From positions 1 through 64,000 of the IMG/VR virus record IMGVR_UViG_3300042261_002385: a stretch of DNA of 64,000 nucleotides; one strand, given 5' to 3'. A program made the position numbers and the translations under genes. Positions 2,994 to 41,847 of this stretch are shown here, piece by piece. The notes beneath the pieces are model-generated. The model did no database searches, was not told the DNA's origin, and worked only from the letters and a program-made list of their open reading frames with translations. The first letter of the stretch is position 1; every line of letters begins with the position of its first letter.

Positions 2994-3575
2994 ATGATTT
3001 GTAAAAAATGCAATACTGAAAAAAGTCTATCTGATTTTCATAATGATACCAAATCAAAAACTGGTAAACAATGCTATTGTAAAACTTGTGCAAAAAAAAT
3101 ACAAAACCAATACTATAAAGAAAACAAAAACAGAGTATTACAGAGAAAAAAAATCTATAGAAATACGGATGAATATAAAAAAAGGAGTAGAGAGTATGAA
3201 TTGGAATATTCAAAAATTCGAAAAGTAAGAGGTAAAACACTTACTGTAAGATTTTCTATGTCATTAAGAGATATACTAAAGAGATGTCTAAAATATAAAG
3301 GAATAAAAAAGAATAGTAGAACTTTCGAAATACTTGGTTATGATGTAAAAAAATTTAGACAGAGAATAGAATGTCAATTTAAAGATGGTATGTGTTGGGA
3401 AAATTATGGAGATTGGGAAATAGACCATAAAAAACCAATTAGTAAATTTGATAAAAGTGCAAAAATTAGTTTAATTAATTCATTATGTAATTTACAACCT
3501 TTGTGGAAAAAAGATAATAGAATGAAAGGAAACAAATTTGATTTAAAAAACGGCTTAGGACCCGTTATAGTTTAG
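2994..3575 (+). CDS. free-standing HNH homing endonuclease with N-terminal Zn ribbon
   Basis: CKKC..CYCKTC N-terminus; WEIDHKKPIS...NLQPLWKKDNRMKGNK HNH motif. Confidence 0.85.
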   Translation: MICKKCNTEKSLSDFHNDTKSKTGKQCYCKTCAKKIQNQYYKENKNRVLQRKKIYRNTDEYKKRSREYELEYSKIRKVRGKTLTVRFSMSLRDILKRCLKYKGIKKNSRTFEILGYDVKKFRQRIECQFKDGMCWENYGDWEIDHKKPISKFDKSAKISLINSLCNLQPLWKKDNRMKGNKFDLKNGLGPVIV

Positions 3576-4922: not shown

Positions 4923-4956
4923 TTTTAATATATAATTGTAGAAAATATAAATATTT

Positions 4957-6027
4957 ATGAAGTATTTAAAATTATTTGAGGATAATTCCGACTCTAAATT
5001 AGAATTGGTCAAAAATATAATTAAAGAAAACCAATTCTTGTCTAAATATGCTGAACAAATTTCACAAGAATCTTTAAAAGAATTCAATGAATATATTTAT
5101 GTAAAGTTACCAGAAGAATTAAATTCACCACATATAAATAAGCATTTTGATAAAAACAATCCTGGTTCTATTTGGTCCATAAGTAAAGAAGAAGTTAGTG
5201 AACTCATACTTGAAACTCTTACTAAAGAGCCTACAAAATCTTTACAAGAAGGACCTACTTTCAAATATAAGTGGCTTAATTTAGAATATACAAAACCCGT
5301 TGGGTTTGATAGTCTGAAAAAAGTTGATGGTGATATATCAAAAGAGGTTGACCTAGAACCATTCGGAATGGTTGACAGAGTCAAAGAGTGGGAAAAAGTT
5401 GACGCTGTTGCTAAACAAAATGGATATGAACTAGTTGCAAAAGAAGGGGGTGAAACAAGAGAATATACTGAAGAAGATTTGAAAAATAACGTTGCTTGTT
5501 TTATTAAACAAGAAGTTGGTGTTGTTGAAGGTGATAAAATGCAAAATCCAACTAAAACTTATAATTTAATCACTGCTAAAGTAGGAGAGGTTGCTGGAAA
5601 ACCAGTCTTAACACTTATGACGGTTTTTCCAGGTATTAATCCAGTAGACAAAGATGGTAAAGATATAACTAATAAAAAAGATTTATCAGTGGCTGGTTAC
5701 GCACTTATAAAATCTAAACCAACAAACGAAAATAATTTATCTAAAGTCAAAAAATTTGAAGATTTCATAAAAGAGTCTCTACCTCGTCAACATACAGTCG
5801 ATCAGTGGAAAAAACTTAGAAAAATGACTAAAGGTGTCGATATAGGTGATCGTATTTCTGATTTAAATAAACAGGGAGCTAATATTCAGTACTACCAAAA
5901 TGTAGTAGACTCAGGAATTGAATCTTATGAAGATTTTGAAAAACACAATAAAAAATTTATACCTGGTTGGAATGTTAAAGGTTTAACAAGTCCATTTTCA
6001 GGAGAAGGAAAAAAATTAAAGAAATGA
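4957..6027 (+). CDS. putative virion-internal protein (MKYLKLFE tag, internal second tag)
   Basis: N-terminal MKYLKLFE; internal LSKVKKFEDFIKES; AATATATA at 4927-4934. Confidence 0.75.
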   Translation: MKYLKLFEDNSDSKLELVKNIIKENQFLSKYAEQISQESLKEFNEYIYVKLPEELNSPHINKHFDKNNPGSIWSISKEEVSELILETLTKEPTKSLQEGPTFKYKWLNLEYTKPVGFDSLKKVDGDISKEVDLEPFGMVDRVKEWEKVDAVAKQNGYELVAKEGGETREYTEEDLKNNVACFIKQEVGVVEGDKMQNPTKTYNLITAKVGEVAGKPVLTLMTVFPGINPVDKDGKDITNKKDLSVAGYALIKSKPTNENNLSKVKKFEDFIKESLPRQHTVDQWKKLRKMTKGVDIGDRISDLNKQGANIQYYQNVVDSGIESYEDFEKHNKKFIPGWNVKGLTSPFSGEGKKLKK

Positions 6028-6299
6028 AACATTTAAAAACATTTGAATCTTATGGTAAAATAGATTCTGATATACATCAAGATATAGCAAATGACCTTCT
6101 ACCAAGATTTCAGAAAATCAAAGATGAGCAAGGTAAATTTACAATGCAAGATTATATTAAATATATGGAGGACAGAGGAGCCGATCCAATGATGGTTGAT
6201 TGTGTTGCATCATGTATTGTCAATATGGGGTTTGACTTTGATTTTGAAAAGAACGATGATGATGATATTGAATTTGTATTGAAAAATACTATTTATTAA
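6024..6299 (+). CDS. putative virion-internal protein (MKHLKTFES tag)
   Basis: Tag-family N-terminus; ATGA overlap with the previous gene. Confidence 0.7.
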   Translation: MKHLKTFESYGKIDSDIHQDIANDLLPRFQKIKDEQGKFTMQDYIKYMEDRGADPMMVDCVASCIVNMGFDFDFEKNDDDDIEFVLKNTIY

Positions 6300-6483
6300 T
6301 CAACTTCAATATATCTTTATATTCATTTATCATCTTTTCAAAAAGAGGCTCATCAAAACTTTTCATCATATTTAGAAGTCTTCCAATTCCAGATTCAGCT
6401 GGTGTCAATTTTCTATTTTTAATTTGAATCATTTTACTTTTGATTTCTTTCTCTAATCTAATTAAGTCTCTTTCTCTTGCCAT
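6289..6483 (-). CDS. small hypothetical early protein
   Basis: 64-aa ORF; TATCTTTG -7 box at 6499-6506 on the minus strand. Confidence 0.65.
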   Translation of the reverse strand: MARERDLIRLEKEIKSKMIQIKNRKLTPAESGIGRLLNMMKSFDEPLFEKMINEYKDILKLINK

Positions 6484-6544
6484 ATTTTAACGTTTCTACA
6501 AAGATAATAATCCTTTTTAAGATGAAAAAATAATATATACCATT

Positions 6545-6937
6545 ATGAAGAGACTAAGAAGATTCAATGAAAGTAAAACTGATATAGATTATGACTATGT
6601 ATATCAATGCTTTGCTGACCTTTTAGATGATAATAAGGCAGAAATTAGACAATATGAAACTGATTATCAAAAGTATATTACTATAGATTTAAAAATTAAT
6701 CAATCTAATCCAGAAAGAAGAGACACTGGAAGAACTATGAAGATTGAAGACTCTAAATTATTTGACTATATAAACGGTGTAAAATCAAATAGCGAATTGT
6801 TACAAGAAGTTGAAATTGCATTAAATAGACTATCGGAAGAATATCCAGAATATAGAGTCAATTTTGATGTATATGCTTATTCAATTCATATAAATGTCTT
6901 TGGTGGAGAGGAGAAAAAAGAACAGTATCCATTTTAA
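6545..6937 (+). CDS. putative virion-internal protein (MKRLRRFNES tag)
   Basis: Tag-family N-terminus; AATATATA at 6532-6539. Confidence 0.7.
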   Translation: MKRLRRFNESKTDIDYDYVYQCFADLLDDNKAEIRQYETDYQKYITIDLKINQSNPERRDTGRTMKIEDSKLFDYINGVKSNSELLQEVEIALNRLSEEYPEYRVNFDVYAYSIHINVFGGEEKKEQYPF

Positions 6938-6938
6938 G

Positions 6939-7775
6939 ATGAAAAAATTAGAAACATATAAGTCTTTCTTTGAATCTCAAAAACAATATTCTATTTATGA
7001 CTTCTATGATTATCTTAGAAATAACCATTGGTCAAATACTGATATATCAACTTTAGAAAGATGGACTGACCATTTTGTAGGTGAAGGTTGGTGGAATAAA
7101 ATCAAATCACATGTTGATAGAATTTTTCAGGTTCTTTCAGAAGTTGACATGAATCATATCAGTGATGCAATGCTCGAAATATTTGATACAGTTCCTGATG
7201 AAAAAGAAAAGAATATCTATTGTGCCGTTCTTTATGGAGATTACGAAAAGATAAATGATAGCAATGAGTATAAATATAATGGAACTATGCCTATTTTTGA
7301 ATCAGATGATATGAAAAGAAAAAGTTATATTTTACATAATATAATTTTTGAAATTGTAAGACCAACAATATCTTACTCAAAAATAACAGGCAATGATATA
7401 GAATTTAGACCGACACCAGAAGCATATTACGTTACCGATAAAAAGTGGCAATGTCAAAATTTTGACTTTTCTCAATTTACCGAACTCAAAGACTATGAGA
7501 TGAAAAGTCTGAAATTCTATTCTCCAGAAAATGTGCTTAGTATGTATAAACCAGGTGTTGTAATTGATATTGGTGGTTGGTCATCTTTAGATTCTCGTAG
7601 AACAGGTGAAATGAGTTTAGTAGAGTTAGAAAAAGAGTTAGATGATAGAATTAATTTAATTACAGCAGAAATAGAATATGAAGAAGTCTTTTGGCCATTT
7701 TCAAGAAAAGAAAGATACTTTGATACATCACAACCAATATATGACTATACTTTAAAAATATTATTGAAAATGTAA
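6939..7775 (+). CDS. putative virion-internal protein (MKKLETYKSFFES tag)
   Basis: Start moved from track 6894 to ATG 6939, 1 nt after the previous stop, which exposes the tag. Confidence 0.7.
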   Translation: MKKLETYKSFFESQKQYSIYDFYDYLRNNHWSNTDISTLERWTDHFVGEGWWNKIKSHVDRIFQVLSEVDMNHISDAMLEIFDTVPDEKEKNIYCAVLYGDYEKINDSNEYKYNGTMPIFESDDMKRKSYILHNIIFEIVRPTISYSKITGNDIEFRPTPEAYYVTDKKWQCQNFDFSQFTELKDYEMKSLKFYSPENVLSMYKPGVVIDIGGWSSLDSRRTGEMSLVELEKELDDRINLITAEIEYEEVFWPFSRKERYFDTSQPIYDYTLKILLKM

Positions 7776-8584
7776 TGAAGTATCTAAAAAAGTACATTCA
7801 ATTTATTTCAGAAGAGATTTTTAATCTTCCATCTTGGCCTTCACTATTTAATCAAGACAAAAATGGATATGTTTTACCAATGTTAATTTGGTCACAGGAT
7901 GTATTCGATGGTGCTTTTAGAGAAGGTGACTATGATACAAAAAAAACACCAACTGGTGTGAAACTTGTAAAGAGTTGGAATTTAGAAAACAATTTAATGG
8001 GTTCATTTTTTGAGTTTGTTGGTGAATTTGTAATTTTCACACATATTAAAGAAGTTAATTTAGAATTTTGTGAATCTAAAGAAAAGGGATATACACTTCC
8101 GGAAAATTTAAGTGAAAGAGTAAATAATTTATATGAACAATATGGTTTAGGAACTCCTATTTTTGTCACAGTTGTTAAAAAATATGAAGATGGTGTAAAG
8201 GTAGTGACCACTGGTTCTAATTGGCACTTAGTTTCTAAATTAGGTATTAAAAAGTTAGGCACAACTACTTATAAAGGATTTGTAAAAGAAACAAAGATTC
8301 CACTTTATAGTGATGATACACAAACACCGGAATCAAAAGAAGCTATTTGGAAAAAACTTTTACAAGATGAAAGTTGTGAGGTAGTTGTTTGGTCTCAAAA
8401 TATGAAAAAAGAATTTCCAATTGAGATGATTGATGGAAATCCTTACTACAGTGGAAATATTCCTGTTTATTTTGGTGATAAAGAAATGAACCAACAATTT
8501 TTAGATTTAGCTGGCGAAGATGAAGAAAAGTATAAAAAGATAAAATCTCTAACAAAAAACTTAAAATTGAAATCGGTTAAATGA
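7775..8584 (+). CDS. putative virion-internal protein (MKYLKKYIQFISEE tag)
   Basis: Tag-family N-terminus; coupled by TAATG overlap. Confidence 0.7.
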   Translation: MKYLKKYIQFISEEIFNLPSWPSLFNQDKNGYVLPMLIWSQDVFDGAFREGDYDTKKTPTGVKLVKSWNLENNLMGSFFEFVGEFVIFTHIKEVNLEFCESKEKGYTLPENLSERVNNLYEQYGLGTPIFVTVVKKYEDGVKVVTTGSNWHLVSKLGIKKLGTTTYKGFVKETKIPLYSDDTQTPESKEAIWKKLLQDESCEVVVWSQNMKKEFPIEMIDGNPYYSGNIPVYFGDKEMNQQFLDLAGEDEEKYKKIKSLTKNLKLKSVK

Positions 8585-9129
8585 AATATTTAAAATCATA
8601 TAAATTATTTGAAAAAAAGAAAGAAGACAAAGTTGAACTACCTAATCTTTCAGAACTCAAAATTGTTGAATTAAAAACAATTGAGGGTAAAAATAAATGG
8701 CATCACAAAAAAGATAAATTGATACATATGGTTTTAGATTTAGGAGAGTGGGAAGAATTTCCATCAAGTAAAATTCCAAACTTTCATAAAAACATTAAAA
8801 AATACATTCCATCAATGAATGAACATAGATGTTCAATTGGTCGTAAGGGTGGTTTTTTCACAAGAGTTAAAAAAGGAACCTGGCTAGGTCACATAATTGA
8901 ACATATAGCACTTGAATTACAAACATTAGCTGGTCATGATACAGGATTCGGTAGAACAAGAGGCACTGGAAAAAAAGCAGAATATAATGTCATATTTAAT
9001 TATGAAGAAAAACAAGTTGGTTTATTAGCCGCTAGAGAAGCTGTTAAAGTAGCCAAGTCTTTAATTAAAGAAGAAAATCCTGAAATAGAAGATATAGTAA
9101 AAAAGTTAAAGGATAAAATTAAAAAATGA
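8581..9129 (+). CDS. stand-alone cyanophycin synthetase N-domain homologue with N-terminal tag
   Basis: LDLGEWEEFPS..IPNF...HRCSIGRKGGFFTRVKKGTWLGHIIEHIALELQTLAG...FGRTR matches the CphA1 N domain, including Cx19Hx3H. Confidence 0.85.
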   Translation: MKYLKSYKLFEKKKEDKVELPNLSELKIVELKTIEGKNKWHHKKDKLIHMVLDLGEWEEFPSSKIPNFHKNIKKYIPSMNEHRCSIGRKGGFFTRVKKGTWLGHIIEHIALELQTLAGHDTGFGRTRGTGKKAEYNVIFNYEEKQVGLLAAREAVKVAKSLIKEENPEIEDIVKKLKDKIKK

Positions 9130-9836
9130 AGTATCTAAAATCATATAAATTATTTGAATCTGTTGATAAATCAAAATTCCCAACTTATACAGAATTACAT
9201 GACTTCTTTGTAGAATTAGAAGATGATGATATTACTAAATTCAATTATAGAGGTGATATGCTTTATCTATTTTTTCCACAAAGATGGGAAAGATCCATTC
9301 AATCACGATTATATTATGATATGTCTTTTGAAGAAGACTTTTTAAATCATAAACCAAAAGAACTAATGGGTGAAACTTGGAGTGAATTTTTTATGGATCC
9401 ACTGGATTATTCAGATAAAAGATTTCTTAGAAGCAGAGCAGAATGGATCCACTTAAATGATATAGAGGAAAAAAGAACAAATATACAACAACTAAGAAAA
9501 GATGTTAAAACATTCGAAGAATTATTTGTAGAAGAAATAGAAAAAGGCAATATAAAAGCTTATCCATTTATACGTATGAGATTTGATATCTTTAAACCAG
9601 AACACTTAGATGAAGTAATAGAAAGACTAAAAATGGTTTATGAAGCTACTGATTTCAGACCACTCTGGGGATTCTGGCTTGAAGATTATGCTGATGAAAA
9701 TAGTTTTGATGTAATGACTTTTGTAAACTCAAGTCTTTATTTAGTTAACTGCTCAGATGAAGAATATCAACATTTAGCTGAAATATTTAATGAAAGTAAT
9801 TTAGATAAACAAGTAACAAAACATTTCATAAAGTAG
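9126..9836 (+). CDS. putative virion-internal protein (MKYLKSYKLFES tag)
   Basis: First 11 residues identical to those of the 8581 protein. Confidence 0.7.
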   Translation: MKYLKSYKLFESVDKSKFPTYTELHDFFVELEDDDITKFNYRGDMLYLFFPQRWERSIQSRLYYDMSFEEDFLNHKPKELMGETWSEFFMDPLDYSDKRFLRSRAEWIHLNDIEEKRTNIQQLRKDVKTFEELFVEEIEKGNIKAYPFIRMRFDIFKPEHLDEVIERLKMVYEATDFRPLWGFWLEDYADENSFDVMTFVNSSLYLVNCSDEEYQHLAEIFNESNLDKQVTKHFIK

Positions 9837-9857: not shown

Positions 9858-9878
9858 TTTTATCTTAATATATAACTT

Positions 9879-10625
9879 ATGAAAACATGCTCTAAATGTA
9901 AAATAGAAAAAGAATTATCTGATTTTTATAAAAAGAAAGCCTCTAAAGATGGCTTTAGAAGTGAATGCAAGAAATGTATTCTAAATAAAGGAAAAATTTA
10001 TTACCAGGATAATAAAGATGAAAGATTAGATTATTACTACAATAACAGAGAAGAAATTCTTGAAAAGAAAAAGGTATATTACCAGGATAATATAGAGAAA
10101 ATATCTGAAAAGGATAAAAAACGTTATAGTGAAAATAAAGAAAAAGAGAATGAACGAACTAAAATGTATTATTCCGAAAATAAAGATATTATTTCTGAAA
10201 GAAAAAGAAAAAAGTATAATGAAAATCCAGATAAAGAACGAAAACGTATTTCCTTATATAGAAAGAAAAATAAAGATAGAATAAATGAGAAGATTAGATT
10301 AAGAAAACAAGATGATACTTTGTATAAAGCAAAAATGGCAATACGCTCAGTCATATCTTGTTCAATTAGAAACCAAGGATATAAGAAAAATAGTCTAACA
10401 TATGAAATACTATGTTGTTCTTATGAAGATTTTAAGTCATATATAGAGGAACAATTTACAGAAGGAATGTCTTGGGAGAATTATGGAGAATGGCATTTGG
10501 ATCATAAAACACCGATAAGTTGGGCAGATAGTGAAGAAAAAGTCTATGAATTAAATCATTACTTAAATTTTCAACCATTATGGGCTTTTGACAATCTATC
10601 AAAAGGAAACAAATGGTCAGATTAA
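9879..10625 (+). CDS. free-standing HNH homing endonuclease (same family as 2994-3575)
   Basis: CSKC..CKKC; WHLDHKTPIS...NFQPLWAFDNLSKGNK. Confidence 0.85.
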   Translation: MKTCSKCKIEKELSDFYKKKASKDGFRSECKKCILNKGKIYYQDNKDERLDYYYNNREEILEKKKVYYQDNIEKISEKDKKRYSENKEKENERTKMYYSENKDIISERKRKKYNENPDKERKRISLYRKKNKDRINEKIRLRKQDDTLYKAKMAIRSVISCSIRNQGYKKNSLTYEILCCSYEDFKSYIEEQFTEGMSWENYGEWHLDHKTPISWADSEEKVYELNHYLNFQPLWAFDNLSKGNKWSD

Positions 10626-10788: not shown

Positions 10789-10814
10789 ACTTTCCAAATT
10801 AATTTTGATATAAA
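10787..10814 (+). promoter_or_regulatory. putative phage two-box promoter AAACTT-N16-TATAAA
   Basis: Identical spacing recurs at 11887-11914. Confidence 0.5.
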
Positions 10815-10860
10815 TCATATCAAATCAAAAGATTTGAATAACAAAAAATAAAAAGCAATT

Positions 10861-11829
10861 ATGGCAATTAATGAATTAGATGACCTATTCAATGGCGGAC
10901 TGGACAGTAAAATGGACTTCTTAAATGAGCAAAAAACAACAACAAACAACGACGGTATTTACCGAGTTGATCTTTCAAAATGTAAGGATAAAAAGAAGGG
11001 TTGGCGCAGTGTTGTTCGTTTTCTCCCTAACTTGACCAAAGATGGTAAAGTTGGTCAATCAGCAATTGAGAAAATTACTCATTATGTTGATATTAAACAA
11101 CCTAAAGAATTAAGCGGATGGTTTGATAGTCCAAAGAATTTCAATGAGAAATGTGCTTTGACTGATCTTTACTATACAATGCAAAATTCTAAAAATGCAA
11201 TTCTTATTGAGAAGTCAAAACAGTTGAAGTATTCTAAAAAATACTACTCTTATGTTTTAGTATTAGAAGATGAGCAACAACCAGAAAATGTTGGAAAAAT
11301 TATGATTTTCCAATATGGTAAAACAATCAAAGATAAAATTCAAGCTGAGAAGAACGGTGAAATCTCAGGTGTTCCTTGTAACGTATTTGATTTAGCAGCA
11401 GGAAAAGATTTCGTTCTTGTAGTTAAAGAAATTCAAACTGGTGACGAAACATATCCTGATTACAAAATGAGTATGTTTAAACCAGAAACTACTTCTCTTC
11501 CAATTTACTTTAAAGAGAAAGGAGCTTTCAAAAATGCACCTCTTAATGAAGGTAAAATCGAAGCTTCGGTTCAAGGTAAAATCAAAGATTTTTTACTTGA
11601 AAGAGACCACGATTTAGAAGAGTATTCACCAAAAGCTCTTACCGAAGAACAACAAGCTAAAATCACTGAGATTACAAATTTCTTAACTGGTAAAGCTTCA
11701 TCTTCTTACAGCTCAGCTAAGGCAGAGTCAAAACCTTCTTCAGATGATTTTGATTTTGATGATAATTTCTCTTCAACTACATCTTCTGCTACAGAAGAAG
11801 AAGAGGATGACTTCTTCGCTGATATGTAA
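10861..11829 (+). CDS. gp32: single-stranded DNA-binding protein, T4 gp32-like
   Basis: VVRFLP, YYSYVLVLED, IFQYGKTIKDKI, FDLAAGKDF and YPDY motifs; acidic C-terminal tail. Confidence 0.9.
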   Translation: MAINELDDLFNGGLDSKMDFLNEQKTTTNNDGIYRVDLSKCKDKKKGWRSVVRFLPNLTKDGKVGQSAIEKITHYVDIKQPKELSGWFDSPKNFNEKCALTDLYYTMQNSKNAILIEKSKQLKYSKKYYSYVLVLEDEQQPENVGKIMIFQYGKTIKDKIQAEKNGEISGVPCNVFDLAAGKDFVLVVKEIQTGDETYPDYKMSMFKPETTSLPIYFKEKGAFKNAPLNEGKIEASVQGKIKDFLLERDHDLEEYSPKALTEEQQAKITEITNFLTGKASSSYSSAKAESKPSSDDFDFDDNFSSTTSSATEEEEDDFFADM

Positions 11830-16064: not shown

Positions 16065-17060
16065 CTAAATCATTTTTTTTGAAATCCACTCATATGTTTT
16101 ACGTAATCCTTTTTCTAAAGGATAATTTATCTCATATCCGATTTTTTCAAAGAATAATTTATTATCAGATTTTCTACCCATTACTCCAATCGGACACTTA
16201 TGACCATATTTTTTTTCAAAATCCTCACCAAAAATGTTATTAATTTTGATGGATTTGTCTGCAATTTTAGAAACGATTTCGACCAATTGATTGATTGTAA
16301 CCATTTCTTCTGAACCAATGTTTACAGGACCAGTAAATTCCGAATTCATTAATTTATCAACTGCCGTCAAACATTCATCAATAAATAAGAAAGATCTTGT
16401 TTGAGTTCCATCACCCCAAATCTCAATCTCACCATTAGATTCTAGAACTTTTCTACAAACTGCTGCCGGTGCTTTTTCTTTTCCACCAGTCCAAGTCCCT
16501 TCAGGACCAAAGATGTTATGAAATCTAGCTATTCGAACATTTAGATTATAATTTCTCATATAAGCCAAGTATAATCTTTCACTGAATAATTTTTCCCAAC
16601 CATACTCGGAATCCGGATTAGCTGGATATGCTGAACTTTCCTCACAATTAGGATTATTCGGGTCTAATTGATTGTGCTCAGGATAAATACAAGCAGATGA
16701 AGAATAAAAAACTTTTTTTACTTTTGTCAAAACACACTCATTTACAACATTTAGATTTATCATAGCTGAATTATGCATGACATTAGCATCATTTTCACCT
16801 GTAAAGATGTAACCAGCACCTCCCATATCAGCTGCTAGTTGATAAACCTCATCAAATCCATTTTCAATATGGAAAACATCTTTAATAAAATTCAAATCTT
16901 TCAAATCTCCTTTGTAAAAATCATCACAAATAATATTATGTCCTAAATGCTCATGATTTTTTATATCAGCGATTCTCACATAAGAATTTTCACTTTTTAG
17001 TTTTCTACCAAGATGACCACCAATAAAGCCACCACCACCAAGTATTAAAATTTTTTTCAT
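16065..17060 (-). CDS. GDP-mannose 3,5-epimerase-like NAD-dependent epimerase
   Basis: GGGGFIG, LAADMGGAGYI, YSSSACIYP and AYPANPDSEYGWEKLFSER motifs. Confidence 0.85.
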   Translation of the reverse strand: MKKILILGGGGFIGGHLGRKLKSENSYVRIADIKNHEHLGHNIICDDFYKGDLKDLNFIKDVFHIENGFDEVYQLAADMGGAGYIFTGENDANVMHNSAMINLNVVNECVLTKVKKVFYSSSACIYPEHNQLDPNNPNCEESSAYPANPDSEYGWEKLFSERLYLAYMRNYNLNVRIARFHNIFGPEGTWTGGKEKAPAAVCRKVLESNGEIEIWGDGTQTRSFLFIDECLTAVDKLMNSEFTGPVNIGSEEMVTINQLVEIVSKIADKSIKINNIFGEDFEKKYGHKCPIGVMGRKSDNKLFFEKIGYEINYPLEKGLRKTYEWISKKMI

Positions 17061-17063
17061 TTT

Positions 17064-17996
17064 TTAAAATTGTTTTTTGTAAATTTTATAGAAATCTTTA
17101 GTTCTCTCAGGTAAATAAGACTCGAAATTACTTAAATCGTTAATCAATTTAAGAGTATTTCTATATCCAATAATCTCATTTTCTAAGTTCTTTATAAGAT
17201 CTTGAACATTTCTATCCTGATACACTGTAGCTTTTGAATAAGCCACTGAATTAGGAAAGTGATATTGAAGTATATAAGAAGCCCATATATCATCCATTCT
17301 GCCAATGAATGGAAATACACAATATACTGGTATGACATCTCTTGATAAAAAAGTATTCTGTGAATTAAATGGTGAAATAACATTTGAACAATAAGGTTCT
17401 TGTATATCAGAATATTTGACAATTGGCTTGAGAGTCAGTCGGGCCATTGCGTCTATATCAGGATCACCATCCCACAAATCAGCCTGAACAAGAATTTTTC
17501 TTTTTGTTTTACCTTTATATTGAACATTATGTCTTTTTTGTAGATACTCAATAGGATATCCTCTATGCCAAACGTAATTGTCTTTAGTTATAGATAACGG
17601 ATCAAATACATTTAGTTCAGGCTCATAAATATCCAACTCGACTTCTTTATTTACTAAAATGTTTTTACCCCAATCGTCATAAGGTATATTATCATCATCG
17701 ACAGTAGCTACTATTTCCGAACCAAGTTTGTAAGCTTCGACAAATCCAATATTTCTTCTTTGAATAGTGTTCCAACCAATTACTTCACTTAGTTCTGTGT
17801 ATTTTTCATCCTGTTGTTCAGGAGTCAAATATATGACATTTTTATACTTCGACTGAAGTTCTAAATATTCGGAATGTGGTGTTTTTTTATCTCCTATAAT
17901 TATAAAATTCCAACAATCATTTTCTGATATCTGACAGAATTTGAGTGTTGCCTCTGTTGGTTTATTTATCGTTGTAGTAACTATTGATTTAATCAT
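17064..17996 (-). CDS. STELLO/RGP (GT75)-like glycosyltransferase or mutase
   Basis: IVTTTIN, RRNIGF, TVDDDN, WHRGYP, GDPDIDAMARL, PFNSQNTF and RMDDIW motifs. Confidence 0.7.
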   Translation of the reverse strand: MIKSIVTTTINKPTEATLKFCQISENDCWNFIIIGDKKTPHSEYLELQSKYKNVIYLTPEQQDEKYTELSEVIGWNTIQRRNIGFVEAYKLGSEIVATVDDDNIPYDDWGKNILVNKEVELDIYEPELNVFDPLSITKDNYVWHRGYPIEYLQKRHNVQYKGKTKRKILVQADLWDGDPDIDAMARLTLKPIVKYSDIQEPYCSNVISPFNSQNTFLSRDVIPVYCVFPFIGRMDDIWASYILQYHFPNSVAYSKATVYQDRNVQDLIKNLENEIIGYRNTLKLINDLSNFESYLPERTKDFYKIYKKQF

Positions 17997-18005
17997 ATTT
18001 CTAAT

Positions 18006-18890
18006 TTAATTTTTGTAGATTATTACATCTTGCTCATTAATAAGACCCCATCCATCTTCATTAGCTTTAAATTTAGGAGCAACATTGGCTTGGTTATAAC
18101 CATTTACGTCTCCACCTATACCTTTGTGACATAAATGGAAAAAGGTCATGCCTAAGTCATACAAATCACCCATACATTTGTATTGTCTGGTGTATCTATT
18201 GTGCATTTCCACATCTACAAATCCCCATCTTGTTAATTCTTCGTAAAAAAAAGTTGACTCTTCACAGATTTTTCTACTGAGTAGAGTTCCAATTGCACCT
18301 CCTCCGAATTGAGAAAGGGAAATTTTGGAAAGTATAGGAAAAACACCATGATCTACTTCTATTGGAGGCCAGCAAGTTCTACCACTGGCTTCCCATTTTT
18401 CTATCTCTGTATCTAAATTTTTAATTCCGTCACAAGACTCATGTAATTTTTCACTGATATGCCATCTAGAAGCCCAATAGAACGCATTGTCATCAGATGT
18501 CAACAGCAGCTCATACATTTTTTTAAAGCTATCAAAAGGTATATAACCATCCGCATCTATGACTAATATAAATTTACCTTTAGATCTTCTAAAAGCCGCG
18601 TTAGCTGCATGTGAAGTAGAAAACGGAGAGTCTGTATATTTTCTACAAACTTCTTTTGGTATATAAACCCAGTTTAAAAAATCATTCTGATTAATTTCTA
18701 AATAATCCGATAATTTTATATCACTTCCCCAATCAGAAACTACTATTTCGATATCATTTGCTCCAAGTTTTGAGATATTATCAACTAGCTTACTTAAGTT
18801 AAGTTTTAGTCTGTGTGGAAAGTTTCCTAAATAATTGTCATTCCTACCATATGTTATAATAGAAAGTAAAATTTCTTTTTTTTCTGTCAT
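18006..18890 (-). CDS. GT-A fold (GT2-like) glycosyltransferase
   Basis: GRNDNY, IVVSDWGS, NAAFRRSKGKFILVIDADG and WGFVD motifs. Confidence 0.75.
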   Translation of the reverse strand: MTEKKEILLSIITYGRNDNYLGNFPHRLKLNLSKLVDNISKLGANDIEIVVSDWGSDIKLSDYLEINQNDFLNWVYIPKEVCRKYTDSPFSTSHAANAAFRRSKGKFILVIDADGYIPFDSFKKMYELLLTSDDNAFYWASRWHISEKLHESCDGIKNLDTEIEKWEASGRTCWPPIEVDHGVFPILSKISLSQFGGGAIGTLLSRKICEESTFFYEELTRWGFVDVEMHNRYTRQYKCMGDLYDLGMTFFHLCHKGIGGDVNGYNQANVAPKFKANEDGWGLINEQDVIIYKN

Positions 18891-18966
18891 TATGTTATTT
18901 TATTTTTTTCTTTCAAAAATTGAAAAACCACATCTATCCTGTAGGTCATCAACAATATTTGTCCAA

Positions 18967-19758
18967 TTATGTTTTATACTTATCCTTTATCTCATTCATT
19001 TTATTTATGAGTGTAAAATCATCAGTATATTCAATATTAAATTGTAGATTAGGTTTTCTAAAATGATGTATTCTAAGTTTATAGTCATCAATTCTATATT
19101 TCGAATCTATTAGCTCTTGTAAAGTCGCCTCTGTTCTACCTTCAATAAGTCTTAAATAATGAACATGAACGGCTTCATCCATTTTACTAGAAATGACTAA
19201 AGACTTATATCGGTTAAGTCCATATTCTTTAAATTTTAAAGAATCCCATCTTTTACTTGTTCTTTTATTTGTAGTATACCAATCACCTAATTCATAACCG
19301 TCATCTAAAACATCAAATGAATTTATAACTAATTGGTCTATGTTTCTATTTTTTAACTCATTTTCTATCGTAGTAGATATTTTCTCATCTAAATTAGATA
19401 CTAAAAATTCATCGACATCTACAAAAACTGATATTGCATCTGGATTTATAGACTTCACAATATTATTACCACTTGTAAAAGACCTTCTAATTCTATCACT
19501 AAGAGTTACATCTCCATGGTAAGACTCCGAATTTTTACAGTTTTCAAAAGAATATACATTGCCAAATCCATCAGACTTATTGATTATAATATTTATATTG
19601 TAAGAATCGCTTATTAATTTCATCTTCTCTACGGTATCGTCTTCAGATGAATCATCATACATTATAAAAGTGTCAAAACCTTGTTCATGGTGATATAATA
19701 ACCAATCTTTAATTCTATCAGATTGGTCTTTGAGTTGTGTTATAATTACATTTTTCAT
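18967..19758 (-). CDS. GT92/GT2-like glycosyltransferase
   Basis: WLLYHHEQGFDTFIMYDDSSED; FVDVDEFL. Confidence 0.7.
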   Translation of the reverse strand: MKNVIITQLKDQSDRIKDWLLYHHEQGFDTFIMYDDSSEDDTVEKMKLISDSYNINIIINKSDGFGNVYSFENCKNSESYHGDVTLSDRIRRSFTSGNNIVKSINPDAISVFVDVDEFLVSNLDEKISTTIENELKNRNIDQLVINSFDVLDDGYELGDWYTTNKRTSKRWDSLKFKEYGLNRYKSLVISSKMDEAVHVHYLRLIEGRTEATLQELIDSKYRIDDYKLRIHHFRKPNLQFNIEYTDDFTLINKMNEIKDKYKT

Positions 19759-20618
19759 AAATTTTTTTCCTTTAATTTTATATTGTTAAAAATTAATTCA
19801 CATCTTTTTTCGAAAGAATGGTTTTCTAATACATATTCACTAGCTCTTTTTGCGATATCTTCTCGTTCTTGTTCGTTTTCAAGATAATATTTTATCTTTT
19901 TTGATAAATCATCATCTGAATAATAAAACATTTTTGAAACGTCTTCATTATAATCTACAAACTTGTGAAAATTCTCGTTGTAGTTTGTAAGCATGAATGA
20001 ACCAGCTGCTATTATTTCAAAATATTTACTATTCATGTCGTAAGACATAGATAAATTAAAACATATTTTTGTTCTTTGCATCTCCTTTATGTAGTCATCA
20101 CCAAAAGCCATAAGGTGTTCAATTCCAAATTTTTCACACATAATTTTTCTTTCCGGAATCATTCCACCAATCAAAGCCAAATCTCTAGTTTTTTCACTAA
20201 TGTATCTTGGTCCATAATGTATTTTAGAAACCGCTAATGGCATCCAAAACGAATTAGGTAAATTATATCTCTCAAAATCTTCTTTGTTATTAAATGCGAC
20301 AAAGTCAATTTTACCCTGTTGAATAAATGGTCTATAATCAACAATGTGAGTATCTATTGCCCAGAACAATTTTGGTGTTTTAATCTTGCTCCAATCCCAC
20401 CATTTCCAATCACTATATGTCCAATAATTCTCAGTAATAATAACTAAATCATACAGATGTGCTACAAATGGAATTTCTATTTCTGATTTCTCACCATTTG
20501 GTCCATAAACATCACACTCATGTCCTAAATTTCTTAATGCATAACAGAACTCATAACCTTCTTTCCAATCAGAGTGTGGTTTACCCGCTAGTAATATATC
20601 AGCTACTAATATTTTCAT
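19755..20618 (-). CDS. CgeB-like GT-B glycosyltransferase
   Basis: FWAIDTH; KICFNLSMSYDMNSKYFEIIAAGSFMLT; YYLENEQEREDIA. Confidence 0.75.
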   Translation of the reverse strand: MKILVADILLAGKPHSDWKEGYEFCYALRNLGHECDVYGPNGEKSEIEIPFVAHLYDLVIITENYWTYSDWKWWDWSKIKTPKLFWAIDTHIVDYRPFIQQGKIDFVAFNNKEDFERYNLPNSFWMPLAVSKIHYGPRYISEKTRDLALIGGMIPERKIMCEKFGIEHLMAFGDDYIKEMQRTKICFNLSMSYDMNSKYFEIIAAGSFMLTNYNENFHKFVDYNEDVSKMFYYSDDDLSKKIKYYLENEQEREDIAKRASEYVLENHSFEKRCELIFNNIKLKEKNL

Positions 20619-20631
20619 ATTTTCTTTTATT

Positions 20632-21360
20632 TTATATTATTGTAACTCCTCTATGTTTTACAACCTCGGAAGCACATTTATTAGCAAAAATTATCGATTT
20701 ATGAATATCTCCACTTTTGAGAAATTCTATAACTAAACCCGACATAAAGCTATCACCAGCACCTGATGTATCTTTAACTTCTACTCTGTCAACTTTGTAT
20801 TTTTTTCCATTGAACTCACAACCATCACCACCCATTGTGTGTATTATTTTATGAGAAAATTCGTCTGTGATAAAATCTTTTGACTTATTGAACTCAAAAT
20901 CATTTATTTTGATAAATTTACAATCTTTTATCCAATTACCTAATATTTTTTTAGTATCAACAAAAACATTATCATGTTTAGCTGAAATAGATTGTATATC
21001 ACTTTCAGTAAGAAAACCCTTATTATAATCTGATATAACAATAATATCATAATCATAATTTATTTTTGATAAATCTATTCTTTCTATTTTATCATTTGAA
21101 TCAACTCTGAAAAACATATGGTTTGATTGGTCATGAACATATCTTGTTTTAGTAATATTATACCAATTATAGTTAGTAATTATGTCACACTCAATATATT
21201 GTTCTATATTTCTTTGAACGTTTTTCGCCATTCCTCCATTTTCTTGTTGATTTATAACATTCAATACAGGAACTGGTGCATCAGGACACAATCTATGAGC
21301 ATTACAGTAAACAAAAATGTCCCTACAACTTTCACCAATTATCAAAACTCTCTTCTTCAT
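20632..21360 (-). CDS. PfkB-family sugar kinase, HldE/RfaE1 heptose-kinase-like
   Basis: IIGESCRD...RLCPDAPVPV, GGMAKNV, SDYNKG and DTSGAGDSF motifs. Confidence 0.8.
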   Translation of the reverse strand: MKKRVLIIGESCRDIFVYCNAHRLCPDAPVPVLNVINQQENGGMAKNVQRNIEQYIECDIITNYNWYNITKTRYVHDQSNHMFFRVDSNDKIERIDLSKINYDYDIIVISDYNKGFLTESDIQSISAKHDNVFVDTKKILGNWIKDCKFIKINDFEFNKSKDFITDEFSHKIIHTMGGDGCEFNGKKYKVDRVEVKDTSGAGDSFMSGLVIEFLKSGDIHKSIIFANKCASEVVKHRGVTII

Positions 21361-21361
21361 T

Positions 21362-22420
21362 TTAAATAGTTTCTTTATCTTTTAGCAAGCTTTCAACTGT
21401 TTCTTTTGGTCCAAAATTTAATTCTTCAAAAGATAACTCTTCATTTAGTCGTTCTTTTCCAAAAATCTCTAAAATTCTATTAGCGATAGTGACCTTTGTA
21501 GGATAGTAGTGTTTTGTTAAATGATGAGATGTCGGAACTGGAACATTTGGTGCGGATACTTTACAGGGCTTATACTTAAGACTATCAAAAACTTCTGTAG
21601 TTATGTTTGATATTATTTCAGAACCAATACTAAACGCATCATTGCAAGTATCAACGGTCAGAATTCTACCAGTTTTCTTGACTGATTTGATTATAGAATC
21701 ATAGTCAATAGGATTCACACTTACTAAATCAATCAACTCAACATCAATACCAGTATTTTTAATCATATCAACCGCCTTCATTGAATCTATCAATCCATCA
21801 CCATAAGCGACAACAGTTATATCATTTCCCTCACAAACCACATTTACTTTGTCTAACGGTTTCTTAAAGTATTCTGTTGAAACATTCTGTTTCATTCCTT
21901 TTAACCATAGATGTTCTAAAATAATTACAGGGTTGTTATCCTCGACAGCTGATATTAATAAACCTTTGGCCATTTCGGGTGTCGATGGAATTACACATTT
22001 TAAACCAGTCGTGTTTCCAAACATCGAGTATAAAGACTGCGAGTGCTGAGGTCCAGTTCCCCATTGTCTTCCTACAACCAATCTAATTACAATTGGAACC
22101 GGATTATCACCCCCAAAACTGTAATTCCATTTAGAAGCCTGTGTTAAGTATGAATCAGCAGCGAATAGTCCAAATTCAACTCTATCATGATGTATTATAG
22201 GCCTCAAACCACCCAGAGCAGCACCAACACAGGCCATAGTTGTCGAAAATTCAGAGTTTGGAGTATCAAAAACTCTATCGGGGTGTATATTTTTCAAACC
22301 TGGAGCTGATACATAATTAGCACCTAATCCCATTATAAAGACTCTTGGGTCATTTTCAATTGATTGATGGATAGCTTCTTTTATAGCATCTCCGTAAGTA
22401 ATTTCTCTTTTATCTTTCAT
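21362..22420 (-). CDS. ThDP-dependent E1 beta-like subunit
   Basis: DTPNSE, GPQHSQ and DLVSVNPID motifs; start reassigned to ATG 22420 (MKDKREITY). Confidence 0.85.
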   Translation of the reverse strand: MKDKREITYGDAIKEAIHQSIENDPRVFIMGLGANYVSAPGLKNIHPDRVFDTPNSEFSTTMACVGAALGGLRPIIHHDRVEFGLFAADSYLTQASKWNYSFGGDNPVPIVIRLVVGRQWGTGPQHSQSLYSMFGNTTGLKCVIPSTPEMAKGLLISAVEDNNPVIILEHLWLKGMKQNVSTEYFKKPLDKVNVVCEGNDITVVAYGDGLIDSMKAVDMIKNTGIDVELIDLVSVNPIDYDSIIKSVKKTGRILTVDTCNDAFSIGSEIISNITTEVFDSLKYKPCKVSAPNVPVPTSHHLTKHYYPTKVTIANRILEIFGKERLNEELSFEELNFGPKETVESLLKDKETI

Positions 22421-23393
22421 AAACATCTTCGTATAAATCTTTTTTATCAGGATCAACATCCAGTTCACACTCTCTAATAGTGGATTTTATATAGTCTAAA
22501 ACTTCACTTTTGATTTGATTAATTTCATTTTTACCACCTAAATCAATAATTTGATTTTCTATTTTGACAAGTGGACAATTTTCAACTCTATTATGAAAAT
22601 TATCATCTTCACTTCGATACCAAGAAATTTTATCTTTATCATCAAATAAAGGCGAACTATGTGACATATGTCTATAAACAAAACATTCCAACACAACAGG
22701 TAGATTGTTTTCTTTAATACTTTCAATTGCTAATTTTGTGGTATTAAAAACACTAAAGTAATCATTTCCATCAGCTTTAAAATAGTTAGCACCTAAACCA
22801 TTTACTATTGTTTTGACATCATAATTTGTAGATCTTCTATCTTTTATAACACTATTTATAGAATAGCTGTTATTTTCAACAATTATCAATAGAGGTAAAT
22901 TGAAAAGACTTGAAAAATTTAGACTCTCGTAAACAATTCCTTCTTCTGAAGCTCCATCACCTAAAAAACAGACCACAATATTATCAGTTTTGTTAAATTT
23001 TTCACTTAGAGCTAGACCAGATGCTAATCCAGTAACACTTCCCAAAATTGGTGTGCTACCCATAAAATTTACACTTTTGTCAATCATGTGCATTGAGCCA
23101 CCTTTACCTGAACAACATCCGGTTTTTTTACCTAACATTTCAGCAATCATTCCTTTTAAACTCCCTCCTTTTGCAAGATAATGACCATGTGAACGGTGAT
23201 TTCCTAGAACTTTATCATCATGTTTAAGATTGTCACAAACTCCAGCCGCAATAGCCTCTTGTCCAACGTAAAAGTGTACAATACTAAAAATTTTATTATC
23301 GATATAATACTTTGCCATTTCCTCTTCAGCAGACCTGATTAGAAATAAGTTCTTATAAATTTTTAGCAAAGAATCTAATTTTTTTTCTTCCAT
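22410..23393 (-). CDS. ThDP-dependent E1 alpha-like subunit
   Basis: HFYVGQEA, HRSHGHYLA, GKGGSMH and GDGASEEG...VENN motifs. Confidence 0.9.
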   Translation of the reverse strand: MEEKKLDSLLKIYKNLFLIRSAEEEMAKYYIDNKIFSIVHFYVGQEAIAAGVCDNLKHDDKVLGNHRSHGHYLAKGGSLKGMIAEMLGKKTGCCSGKGGSMHMIDKSVNFMGSTPILGSVTGLASGLALSEKFNKTDNIVVCFLGDGASEEGIVYESLNFSSLFNLPLLIIVENNSYSINSVIKDRRSTNYDVKTIVNGLGANYFKADGNDYFSVFNTTKLAIESIKENNLPVVLECFVYRHMSHSSPLFDDKDKISWYRSEDDNFHNRVENCPLVKIENQIIDLGGKNEINQIKSEVLDYIKSTIRECELDVDPDKKDLYEDVYER

Positions 23394-23401
23394 ATTTTTT
23401 T

Positions 23402-24439: not shown

Positions 24440-24440
24440 T

Positions 24441-25121: not shown

Positions 25122-25177
25122 TACATTTTTATTTTTTTATCATTCCGATTTCTTATGAATTTCAATGACATTTCAAA

Positions 25178-26526: not shown

Positions 26527-26530
26527 TTAT

Positions 26531-27358: not shown

Positions 27359-27359
27359 A

Positions 27360-29158: not shown

Positions 29159-29160
29159 AC

Positions 29161-30198: not shown

Positions 30199-30199
30199 T

Positions 30200-39936: not shown

Positions 39937-41847
39937 ATGATTTTAAGATATAATAATTTCATTGAAGGAGATACACTTTTTGAAAGTTTAATAAATGAAA
40001 CTTATGTTTATTACGTAAAAGACTTTAAAGATGTTCTTTATAAATTATCAAGACAATCTCAGATAGCAAAAGATCTTATTGATTTAGAATATAGAGATGT
40101 TAAAAATGATATGACTTTTATTTCTCTTTCTGATAGAGAAGGATACATTTCAGGTTCTACATTAAGAAACTTAAAAAAGAATGTAGAAAAATCTTTCAAA
40201 GATTGGGCTGAAGGCCAAAATTTAGGTGATGAACGAACTCAAAAAGTTTTAGACACAATGATTGACAAAATTGAAAAAGGTGAGACCTCTCAATCGGATG
40301 TCAATTTTATGTTTAAAGAATATGATTTAGGGACCAAATCAAGAAATGATGTAAAACTAGGTAGATTGATAAATGCACTTTTGCCAGGAAAATACACTTC
40401 AAAAGATATTGAAGAATTTACAAATAAATTTAAAGCTACTCTTTCAAACCAAGGTGAACGCTTTGAAGAAGTTTCTGGTGAGGATATTGAAAATTGGTAT
40501 TCAGCTGGAAACTATAAAGAAATGTCTGGAACTCTTGGAAACTCTTGTATGGCACAAAAAACTGGACTGTTTAAGATTTATACTGAAAATCCAGATGTTT
40601 GTAAGATGTTAATTCTTTTAGAAGACGATAAACTAATTGGAAGAGCCCTAGTATGGAAATTGAGTTCAATTAAAATTTATGGAAAAGATCCAGCACAAGA
40701 TAGTTGGTTTATGGATAGACAATATACAATTAAAGATTCCGATGTTGAGAAATTCAGAAACTACGCTAAAGAAAAAGGTTGGATTTATAAGTCATCTAAT
40801 AATCATCATTCGTTTAGTAATGTAACAATAGAAGGAGAAGAAAAAAATGCCACATTAGAAGTTCAAGTGAAAGCAACTAACTACGGTCAATATCCATATA
40901 TGGATACTTTCAGAAGATTTGATCCGAATGAAGGAATTCTTTATAACGATGATGATGAAGATGAAAGCTATGAAGGTCAATACATTTTATCCGATACGGG
41001 TGGTGGATATCAAGAAATTGAATCCGGTGTTTGGTCTGAATGGCATGATAGAAGAATTCCACATGATGAAGCAGTTTGGTCTGATTGGGCCGATTCTTAT
41101 CTTTATAGAGATAGTGCAATTTATATAGAAACAGGATCTCGTAGATATAGAGACTCTTGGTATCCAGAAGATTGTGATGACATTGTTTATGATGAGTGGA
41201 TTGATGAACCAATACATACTGATGATGCTGTTTACTCAGATGCTTATGGTTACCATCTTTATGACGAAAATGCTGTTGAAGCTATTAAGAAAATAGACTC
41301 TGATGGAGAAGCAATTGGAGCTGATTCAAACTGGTATCATCGTGATGATGATGATATTATTCATGCAGGTTATTACAGAGGTCAAAAATGGTATAAAATA
41401 CTTTCACAAGAATGGTCGAGTTGGGTCGATTATGATTGGGCTTTAAGAGAATTATTTACATTAGACTATAAAGATGAGCCTATTCCAGTAAGATATGAAT
41501 TAGATGTTTATAAAATAATTGGTGAAAAACCAGAGGAGTTAGACAATGTTAAATATCTATCTAAGGTAGATGCATTAGTTTTAGGTATTAAAATTGATAA
41601 TGAGACCGAAAGATTTACTGACAAATTTGCTTATGAAGATAGTATCTTATCTATAAGAGATATGATTAAATCTAAACTTAACTCAGAAATAAAAAGAATT
41701 GAAGATATAATTGAAGAAAGGGGTCAATTACAAATTAAATTCAGTGACGAGGAGAAAGAAAATTATAGAAAACAAATCAGAGGTAAATTAGAAAGATATC
41801 AAACCAGATTAGAAGAAATAGACACAAATGAATTTATTGAAAAATAA
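39937..41847 (+). CDS. large conserved phage protein with tag-like N-terminus and acidic ~13-aa repeats
   Basis: MILRYNNFIE; SCM, GRALVW, FMDRQY and YPYMDTF motifs; AATATATA at 39924-39931. Confidence 0.75.
   Translation: MILRYNNFIEGDTLFESLINETYVYYVKDFKDVLYKLSRQSQIAKDLIDLEYRDVKNDMTFISLSDREGYISGSTLRNLKKNVEKSFKDWAEGQNLGDERTQKVLDTMIDKIEKGETSQSDVNFMFKEYDLGTKSRNDVKLGRLINALLPGKYTSKDIEEFTNKFKATLSNQGERFEEVSGEDIENWYSAGNYKEMSGTLGNSCMAQKTGLFKIYTENPDVCKMLILLEDDKLIGRALVWKLSSIKIYGKDPAQDSWFMDRQYTIKDSDVEKFRNYAKEKGWIYKSSNNHHSFSNVTIEGEEKNATLEVQVKATNYGQYPYMDTFRRFDPNEGILYNDDDEDESYEGQYILSDTGGGYQEIESGVWSEWHDRRIPHDEAVWSDWADSYLYRDSAIYIETGSRRYRDSWYPEDCDDIVYDEWIDEPIHTDDAVYSDAYGYHLYDENAVEAIKKIDSDGEAIGADSNWYHRDDDDIIHAGYYRGQKWYKILSQEWSSWVDYDWALRELFTLDYKDEPIPVRYELDVYKIIGEKPEELDNVKYLSKVDALVLGIKIDNETERFTDKFAYEDSILSIRDMIKSKLNSEIKRIEDIIEERGQLQIKFSDEEKENYRKQIRGKLERYQTRLEEIDTNEFIEK

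Follow-up and report, generated by a model that had tools for sequence, protein, structure and literature searches.

The first 64,000 nucleotides of the IMG/VR virus record IMGVR_UViG_3300042261_002385 (the window; the 436,265-bp record itself, with a GC content of 31% and a completeness of about 95% according to CheckV, is called G000 below) hold, at positions 4,957 to 9,836, an array of seven genes whose products begin with variants of one short motif. This motif recurs throughout the genome and across a clade of related huge phages, so the array is one cluster of it and not a local peculiarity. Very probably it is a portable N-terminal tag, conserved as a peptide and borne by unrelated cargo proteins, and the best explanation of its form is an amphipathic helix of about 8-13 residues, followed by a polar linker and then by a cargo domain of independent origin. 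As for its function, the best-supported single reading is that of a propeptide comparable to the capsid-targeting sequence (CTS) of phage T4, which would dock on the scaffold, be cleaved after a Glu by a gp21-like protease and leave its cargo resident in the head; we give this reading a probability of roughly 0.4.

Our own gene call for G000 comprises 534 genes, which cover 93.6% of the sequence. The strict pattern M[KR]x[LIVMF][KRQNH]x[FYW] occurs at 52 of these 534 N-termini, as against 5 of 2176 internal methionines. The genome-wide check of N-termini suggested in the first-pass annotation of the window came out in favor of the motif: using a 16-column profile made from the strict-pattern tags of G000 and of its closest relative W01 (LR756502.1), 64 of the 534 N-termini reached the threshold of at least 8 bits, and none of 921 internal-Met windows did so. 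Since such a profile matches by construction the strict tags from which it was built, what is informative here is the additional members and the internal controls. Three main variants can be told apart, namely MKxLKx[FY]E[SDEN][FY], MKxLKx[FY]K[LI]FE[SD] and MKxLKx[FY]NE[SN], and the layout that they have in common reads as M, K/R, an aromatic residue or His, L/I/V, K/R, any residue, F/Y, zero to three residues, Glu, and then a small or acidic residue. Genes with the tag are found across the whole of G000 with modest clustering (16 adjacent pairs versus 7.5 expected).

Two simpler accounts of the motif were rejected. An artefact of chance or composition is ruled out by the internal-Met control, by reversed-pattern controls and by W02 (LR756501.1; 735 kb), a relative with the same GC content as G000. 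A Sec or lipoprotein signal peptide is likewise ruled out, because residues 8-20 are polar or charged, mostly E, S, D, N and K, and because structure modeling gives a short amphipathic helix followed by coil.

The first-pass annotation had taken the conserved unit to be a portable module of DNA, which did not hold up. The codons of the tag vary freely (AAA/AAG, AGA/CGT, TTA/CTA/CTT/ATT/ATA/GTA, TTT/TTC, TAT/TAC, GAA/GAG), and synonymous usage inside it equals that of untagged N-termini and lies near that of gene bodies. Thus, the conserved unit is the peptide, and an RNA- or DNA-level element is ruled out as the main cause. The amino acid replacements are chemically conservative: H/Y/F/W at position 3, L/I/V at position 4, K/R at positions 2 and 5, and F/Y at position 7. 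To judge from these codons and residues, selection acts at the level of the peptide.

In the array itself, all seven open reading frames (ORFs) are real, lie on the + strand and begin with the motif as the first-pass annotation had stated; its observation that the operons follow a promoter-like box was also correct for both of them:

4927..4934, + strand: promoter-like box AATATATA, ahead of the first operon of the array
4957..6027, + strand: tagged gene 1, 356 aa, start MKYLKLFE, profile score 20.5 bits
6024..6299, + strand: tagged gene 2, 91 aa, start MKHLKTFES, profile score 21.3 bits
6532..6539, + strand: AATATATA box, 5 nt before the ATG of gene 3, a leaderless-like spacing
6545..6937, + strand: tagged gene 3, 130 aa, start MKRLRRFNES, profile score 17.1 bits
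6936..7775, + strand: tagged gene 4, 279 aa, start MKKLETYKSFFES, profile score 10.2 bits
7775..8584, + strand: tagged gene 5, 269 aa, start MKYLKKYIQFISEE, profile score 21.8 bits
8581..9129, + strand: tagged gene 6, 182 aa, with the tag at residues 1-11, a charged linker at 12-22 and a cyanophycin-synthetase-like N-terminal domain
9126..9836, + strand: tagged gene 7, 236 aa, start MKYLKSYKLFES, profile score 24.3 bits, look-alikes viral only

Their scores with the profile, which derives from strict-pattern tags, run from 17 to 24 bits, with 10 for the start at 6936. This start of gene 4 is an internal Met of ORF 6894-7775 and not its first Met, and it overlaps the preceding gene by ATGA; overlaps of the ATGA type join the array genes into the two operons, each behind its AATATATA box. 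The near-identity of the beginnings of the 8581 and 9126 genes reported earlier is real, 31 of their first 33 nt being shared. For gene 5 (7775-8584) a GNAT acetyltransferase-like cargo is a weak lead. A 64-aa ORF at 6289-6483 (- strand) lies opposite, between the two tagged operons, and has a TAnnTTTG-type element upstream. The array and the nrdB gene are flanked by a pair of paralogous HNH/endonuclease VII-like genes at 2994-3575 (+ strand) and 9879-10625 (+ strand), both starting M..K.C..EK.LSDF.

Of the three related starts that had been pointed out elsewhere in the window, the one at 50344 is a clear member (17.6 bits), that at 39937 is borderline (6.9 bits) and that at 37776 is unconvincing (2.1 bits). 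Outside the array, the window thus offers the following:

39937..41847, + strand: borderline member, 636 aa, start MILRYNNFIEGDTLFES, profile score 6.9 bits
48929..50344, - strand: tagged gene, 471 aa, start MKYLKKYE, profile score 17.6 bits
51283..51423, - strand: 46-aa ORF with the tag-like start MRLIKKYNQ, which has no Glu, profile score 11.4 bits

The product of 48929-50344 has a class-I glutamine amidotransferase (GATase) domain at residues 326-440, and the ORF at 51283-51423 may not be a real gene.

The claim that the peptide sits on unrelated cargo, enzymes included, is upheld by BLAST, by Pfam and by the add-on architecture of the proteins. After the first 14 residues are trimmed, few mutual BLAST matches are left among the tagged proteins of G000, and the Pfam domains recognized in 5 of the 51 that were scanned are all different: a cyanophycin-synthetase N-domain (CphA_N), DUF5824, a GATase, an Asp/Glu racemase and a CPT-like kinase. 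Among the IMG/VR matches listed, this range is widened by pterin-4a dehydratase, ankyrin repeats, ART-PolyVal, SET, SprT and kinases, as seen in representatives of 115 BLAST clusters; the largest cluster takes in 76 of 287 tagged proteins, and 172 of 523 same-locus tagged pairs are linked by BLAST. Going by the sequences of the 76-member cluster, some arrays are true paralogue expansions, and a few pairs in G000 are also paralogous; the cargo is otherwise mostly unrelated.

The architecture is best seen in gene 6 (8581-9129), in whose product residues 50-163 match Pfam PF18921 at 1.9e-43. In bacterial cyanophycin synthetases and in a viral group of 300 aa, the protein opens directly with the domain (MKI.EIKV...), and the 180-aa phage copies of CphA_N have about 27 extra residues ahead of it, made up of the tag and a Lys/Glu-rich linker. 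Since nothing precedes the domain in the bacterial homologues, the tag is an addition to this cargo. An AlphaFold2 model of the gene 6 product (46 sequences) has the domain at a pLDDT above 95 from residue 21, with a detached helix at residues 2-13 (pLDDT about 50) and then coil; as modeled, the tag is not part of the cargo fold. A tblastn search with the CphA_N cargo against the phage collection found none. In other contigs of about 30% GC (L223 and L224, from ENA and JGI), the same cargo has the N-terminus MKx[FY]IKxLLRE instead, which recurs on 4-5 neighboring genes per contig and may represent another tag system, belonging to a different phage lineage. One cargo with differing lineage tags would be the expected look of a targeting signal that is read by a lineage-specific partner.

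Lineage-specific forms of the tag are also seen within the clade. W01 has 105 tagged genes out of 972 by the strict pattern and 161 by the profile, often in arrays of up to ten genes, and in G000 and relatives the tagged share of proteins comes to 10-17%. In W02, only 6 of 1021 genes (0.6%) fit the strict pattern, and about 25-30 start with MIKK[FY]K[LI]FE, where the core is unchanged but displaced by two residues; orthologues in G000, W01 and W02 retain the tag in its local form. In a MIKKF-type paralogue family of W02 (e.g. LR756501.1 474929-476339), the tag is soon followed by another conserved motif, DPYGEE(I/D)W. A DNA form of the pattern, counted in nine genomes against its reversed control, gave the following:

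G000: 57 matches, reversed control 6
W01: 119 matches, reversed control 13
W04: 96 matches, reversed control 7
W05: 59 matches, reversed control 15
W06: 34 matches, reversed control 15
W02: 20 matches, reversed control 11
Lak-A1: 15 matches, reversed control 9
pT24: 12 matches, reversed control 3
MA9V-1: 3 matches, reversed control 2

The recurrent form in W06 is MKYIKEY, and the matches in pT24 resemble ordinary MKKLK starts. The tag was not found in the cultured relatives Tenacibaculum phage pT24 and Chryseobacterium phage MA9V-1, both of which have related head genes. A very specific degenerate pattern of 33 nt is present in at least 119 IMG/VR stretches. Among the matches listed, 287 of the 1146 genes on these loci are tagged, and 10 of the 28 larger tag-bearing contigs have a capsid protein 68-78% identical to that of G000, the rest being mostly small fragments. 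A Gp23 match is absent from the tag-rich 281-kb IMG/VR contig G004, which has other genes in common with G000 and is probably a fragment. The 330-kb IMG/VR record G006 shows dozens of tagged genes every 300-500 bp between 247 and 305 kb, in very long tandem arrays with 92 pattern matches versus 4 in the control. No published description turned up in literature searches that covered the motif strings and huge-phage tags of the CTS kind.

The internal proteins of T4 are diverse and have only the CTS in common, which carries them into the scaffolding core and is removed by gp21 (PMC3012670, PMC5694885); the CTS of IPI, IPII and IPIII goes back to Mullaney and Black 1996, as summarized in the same two articles. 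Like the tag described here, it is an N-terminal peptide (10-20 residues) that runs from Met1 on unrelated proteins, has the form M-K-x-hydrophobic-K/Q-x-F and ends in Glu. In the T4 record, IPI starts with MKTFKEF, thereby fitting the strict pattern used for G000, and IPII and IPIII start with MKTYQEF; M-K-x-[FY]-[KQ]-x-F finds only these three and gp61.1 in T4, with one match for the reversed control. T4 gp61.1 (NC_000866 18966-19130, 54 aa) begins with MKTFKEF, the same as the CTS of IPI. The resemblance to the CTS noted in the first-pass annotation extends to the general pattern of a short motif (M1, K2, a hydrophobic residue at 4, K/Q at 5, F/Y at 7) but not to the details of positions 3 and 4, where the tag has Tyr/His and not Thr, and an aliphatic and not an aromatic residue, respectively. 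The two also differ in scale, with 3-4 genes in T4 and tens to more than 100 per genome here, in the cargo, which in the huge phages includes metabolic enzymes and is acidic on average, and in the existence of several variants and lineage dialects.

Further elements of the T4 system recur here at the level of genes, namely a shell of the gp23 type, a protease of the gp21 type and a scaffold with [IL]-x-E sites. G000 encodes a T4-type head machinery with a Gp23 major capsid protein, portal, terminase, sheath and a fused protease-scaffold:

G000 267436-269208: Gp23-family major capsid protein, Pfam match 4e-28
G000 269288-271387 (L051:16406-18502), - strand: gp21-like prohead protease fused to scaffold repeats, 699 aa, directly upstream of the capsid gene

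The Pfam S77 match of the 699-aa protein is below the cut-off at 22.5 bits, and a PDB search with the single sequence of its protease domain found nothing; a profile of the domain from seven homologues matches PDB 5JBL, the T4 prohead protease gp21, with E = 8e-7, and His71 and Ser126 are invariant in these seven. After the protease domain come about 14 tandem 14-residue repeats, YSEY[IL]AENLDKNI. The fused scaffold has about 11-14 [IL]AE sites, and in relatives of G000 the repeats have 10-11; the repeats are kept in W01, W02, W04 and W05 and are degenerate in W06, and none turned up in the ORF that precedes the capsid gene of Lak-A1 or of pT24. The YSEYIAE of the repeat resembles residues 4-10 of the T4 CTS, YQEFIAE, and every copy has an [IL]AE, the classical cleavage sequence of gp21, with which the T4 CTS likewise terminates. 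More than 80% of the tags have their first Glu at residue 8, 9 or 11; about three quarters show L/F/I/Y at P3, and S/E/N/D predominate at P1'. With its mostly hydrophobic P3, this Glu could be a gp21-type site. The capsid propeptide, aligned to the T4 gp23 cleavage site, has no Glu in common with it, and the maturation site of the capsid protein is thus not fixed by alignment; the capsid proteins of the clade instead conserve EYAE and I-x-E-N motifs upstream.

We accordingly picture a T4-like CTS as working in the following way, in steps that we infer from this analysis. The tag would dock a newly made protein onto the prohead scaffolding core, which would be the repeat region of the protease-scaffold fusion, as the shell closes. 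The gp21-like protease would next cut behind the tag Glu and fragment the scaffold at the [IL]AE sites as well. The cargo, now mature, would remain inside the head as a virion resident and could be ejected into the host with the DNA. When residues 1-470 of the protease-scaffold were modeled in complex with a tagged protein of 92 aa, the score was 0.00 ('no answer'), which is evidence neither way.

Comparable loading by peptides is known elsewhere. The phiKZ-like giants, SPN3US and phiKZ among them, load many of their head-internal proteins via N-terminal propeptides that are cut after Glu by a gp21-related protease, and some paralogues have identical N-termini (PMC5694885, PMC10052503). These propeptides are mostly longer than 100 residues and lack a common short consensus, and the phage lineage differs from that of G000. 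The cut motif of the phiKZ-like phages is S/A/G-x-E. Encapsulin cargo-loading peptides resemble the tag in being short, portable and sufficient to load unrelated enzymes into an HK97-fold shell; they differ in being usually C-terminal and uncleaved, and in binding the shell rather than a scaffold, in cellular nanocompartments.

Several observations weigh against a CTS function. The likeness to T4 covers only about five positions of a short motif, and an MK start is very common. Tags of the commonest variant, K-x-F-E, frequently have T or K at P3 (e.g. K-T-F-E, K-K-F-E), and the [IL]AE site of the scaffold is in none of the tags. With 10-17% of the proteome tagged, the scale greatly exceeds the 3-4 CTS proteins of T4, and by the position check over the whole of G000 the tagged genes are not concentrated at the head module. 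Several of the cargo proteins (Glu racemase, GATase, kinase) are metabolic enzymes, which are odd candidates for the capsid or for injection. A point on the other side, in favor of a CTS, is the ART-PolyVal ADP-ribosyltransferase cargo of one IMG/VR protein, which recalls T4 Alt, a packaged enzyme. The tagged proteins are also slightly more acidic than the rest (median pI, or isoelectric point, 5.4-5.6), unlike the internal proteins of T4, which are basic. Finally, the promoters are not specific to head genes: a TATATA-type box precedes the capsid, portal, sheath, terminase (TerL), gp13, gp25 and protease genes, that is every identified structural gene, and also the nrdB, uvsW, uvsX, primase and gp47 homologues, so that taking the box as a pure late marker proved mistaken. 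In favor of the CTS reading, among genes with an upstream gap of their own the TATATA box is present on 22 of 28 tagged genes versus 115 of 256 others (p = 0.001). Given this enrichment, tagged genes share the promoter type of the structural genes, a type that is not exclusively late.

A rather unlikely alternative is that the tag addresses a destination or partner other than the capsid, be it a phage-built compartment or factory, a phage chaperone, or a route of timed degradation or stabilization that recognizes N-termini. Its receptor would be lineage-specific, and cleavage would not be needed. The N-terminal specificity, the selection on the peptide, the add-on architecture and the lineage dialects would all be accounted for, the acidic bias and the genome-wide spread fit as well, and the large share of the proteome and the metabolic cargo fit better than they do with packaging. 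However, no candidate gene for a receptor or compartment was identified, and the match to the T4 CTS pattern, along with a fixed Glu with a hydrophobic P3, would be left as coincidence.

It is improbable that the tag is an expression module, boosting initiation or early elongation in a host that does not use Shine-Dalgarno sequences and spreading by recombination at a shared 5' cassette. The upstream regions show no clear Shine-Dalgarno sequence, and many genes follow the box at a leaderless-like distance of 4-8 nt. AATATATA has 169 copies in G000 (in the window e.g. at 4927-4934, 6532-6539 and 9867-9874), of which 126 are found no more than 60 nt ahead of a gene start, with a bimodal spacing to the ATG of 4-8 nt or 15-27 nt, and the shorter spacing suggests transcripts with no leader or almost none. 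A Bacteroidota-type TAnnTTTG element lies upstream of a further set of genes, and these promoters point to a host in that phylum. Such a cassette could further account for domain shuffling between tagged genes of G000 and W01; the C-terminal 84 aa of gene 1 (4957-6027) match, with 71% identity, part of a W01 protein that has no tag. Metagenome matches limited to about 40 nt around tag starts, and joints running from tag to tag, fit the same scheme. In other freshwater samples, unrelated contigs match the window only over such stretches (6009-6051, 8576-8612, 9115-9160), and there are gene-sized joints from 7791 to 9119, from 8626 to 9124, and from 9160 back to 9122 with 725 nt between. The tag-coding stretches may thus be recombination points for gene gain and loss, as a lead only, the joints possibly being from other loci or other phages. 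What argues against the module is that the tag and untagged N-termini do not differ in synonymous codon use, which leaves no extra RNA-level constraint, that the conservative swaps (H/Y/F/W at 3, F/Y at 7, K/R, L/I/V) call for a reader of the protein, that W02, a genome of the same kind and GC content, has the strict tag on only 0.6% of genes, and that most tagged genes are not leaderless-like.

Shuffling at gene starts has a counterpart in T4-type phages, for which promoter-early-stem-loop (PeSL) cassettes and a hyperplastic internal-protein (IP) locus were reportedly described by Arbiol et al. in 2010 and Repoila et al. in 1994; gene gain and loss driven by recombination is said to have been proposed for the T-even IP locus. 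PeSLs are short conserved sequences at gene starts in variable regions, with a possible role in gene shuffling; they are non-coding and conserved as DNA. The tag differs in being coding and conserved as a peptide, and the tag-to-tag joints in metagenomes hint at similar shuffling.

That the tagged proteins are old paralogues of one expanding family, recognizable only at the N-terminus, is very improbable: tandem arrays, the 76-member cluster and the 172 linked pairs found among the IMG/VR matches listed, and the few paralogue pairs of G000 speak for it, but most tagged proteins of G000 share nothing past a tag that lies outside the fold, and the unrelated folds with tagless cellular homologues (CphA_N, racemase, GATase, kinase, SET, ankyrin, ART) refute a single family as the general explanation while leaving it valid for some arrays.

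The genome that carries the array is, from its genes, that of a T4-like huge phage. Besides the portal (gp20), large terminase (gp17) and sheath (gp18), homologues of T4 gp4, gp25, UvsW, gp41, gp43, gp44, gp46, gp47, gp61 and UvsX are present in G000, and a gene for a gp32-type single-stranded-DNA-binding protein is at 10861-11829 of the window; a capsid protein of nucleocytoplasmic large DNA viruses (NCLDV) was not found in G000. The capsid protein shares about 70% identity with its counterparts in two uncultured huge phages, LR756502.1 (642 kb) and LR745206.1, about 51% with those in LR756501.1 and LR756504.1, 34% with that in LR756500.1 and 29% with those in the Prevotella Lak phages. DNA nearly identical to the window was absent from the phage collection, and the region is present in at least 19 DNA runs from freshwater, river and drinking water. 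The host-type TAnnTTTG upstream elements suggest that the host belongs to the Bacteroidota, with the Flavobacteriia as candidates. Another upstream element, TTGATATAA, precedes the gp32, gp44 and gp46 homologues (window 10789-10860; G000 upstream of 118616 and 252884) and is found on only 4 genes, none of them tagged.

Other parts of the window stand out in their own right. It has 11 tRNA genes in three groups; at 37118-37204 (- strand), adjoining tRNA-Met, ARAGORN predicts a tRNA whose anticodon has four bases (agta) and whose identity the program leaves undetermined. A long run of genes on the - strand at 16065-31979 encodes N-termini resembling NAD-dependent epimerases/dehydratases and glycosyltransferases, which suggests, judging by sequence alone, a sugar-nucleotide or glycan cluster. 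The segment 55533-62934 (+ strand) has a GC content of 39-41%, as opposed to about 30% elsewhere, and has a 1729-aa gene and three smaller ones with signal-peptide-like N-termini of the Bacteroidota kind.

In biological terms, we tentatively suggest, as a possibility rather than an expectation, that a freshwater clade of huge phages, probably living on Bacteroidota, sorts more than a tenth of its proteins, captured host-type enzymes among them, to a phage-built destination by means of a dialect-bearing peptide 'zip code'. If the tag is a CTS, a known kind of signal is used here on an unprecedented scale. If its destination is the capsid, dozens of different pre-made proteins would be delivered with the DNA, a diversity an order of magnitude above that of any studied phage. 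Much of the 'dark' gene content of huge phages would then become a defined functional class, packaged and possibly injected; this would help to explain very large capsids and genomes, and would provide a 10-residue handle for loading foreign proteins. If the tag points elsewhere, it would reveal a sorting system in phages that has not yet been described. In both cases the motif offers a simple marker that can be searched for.

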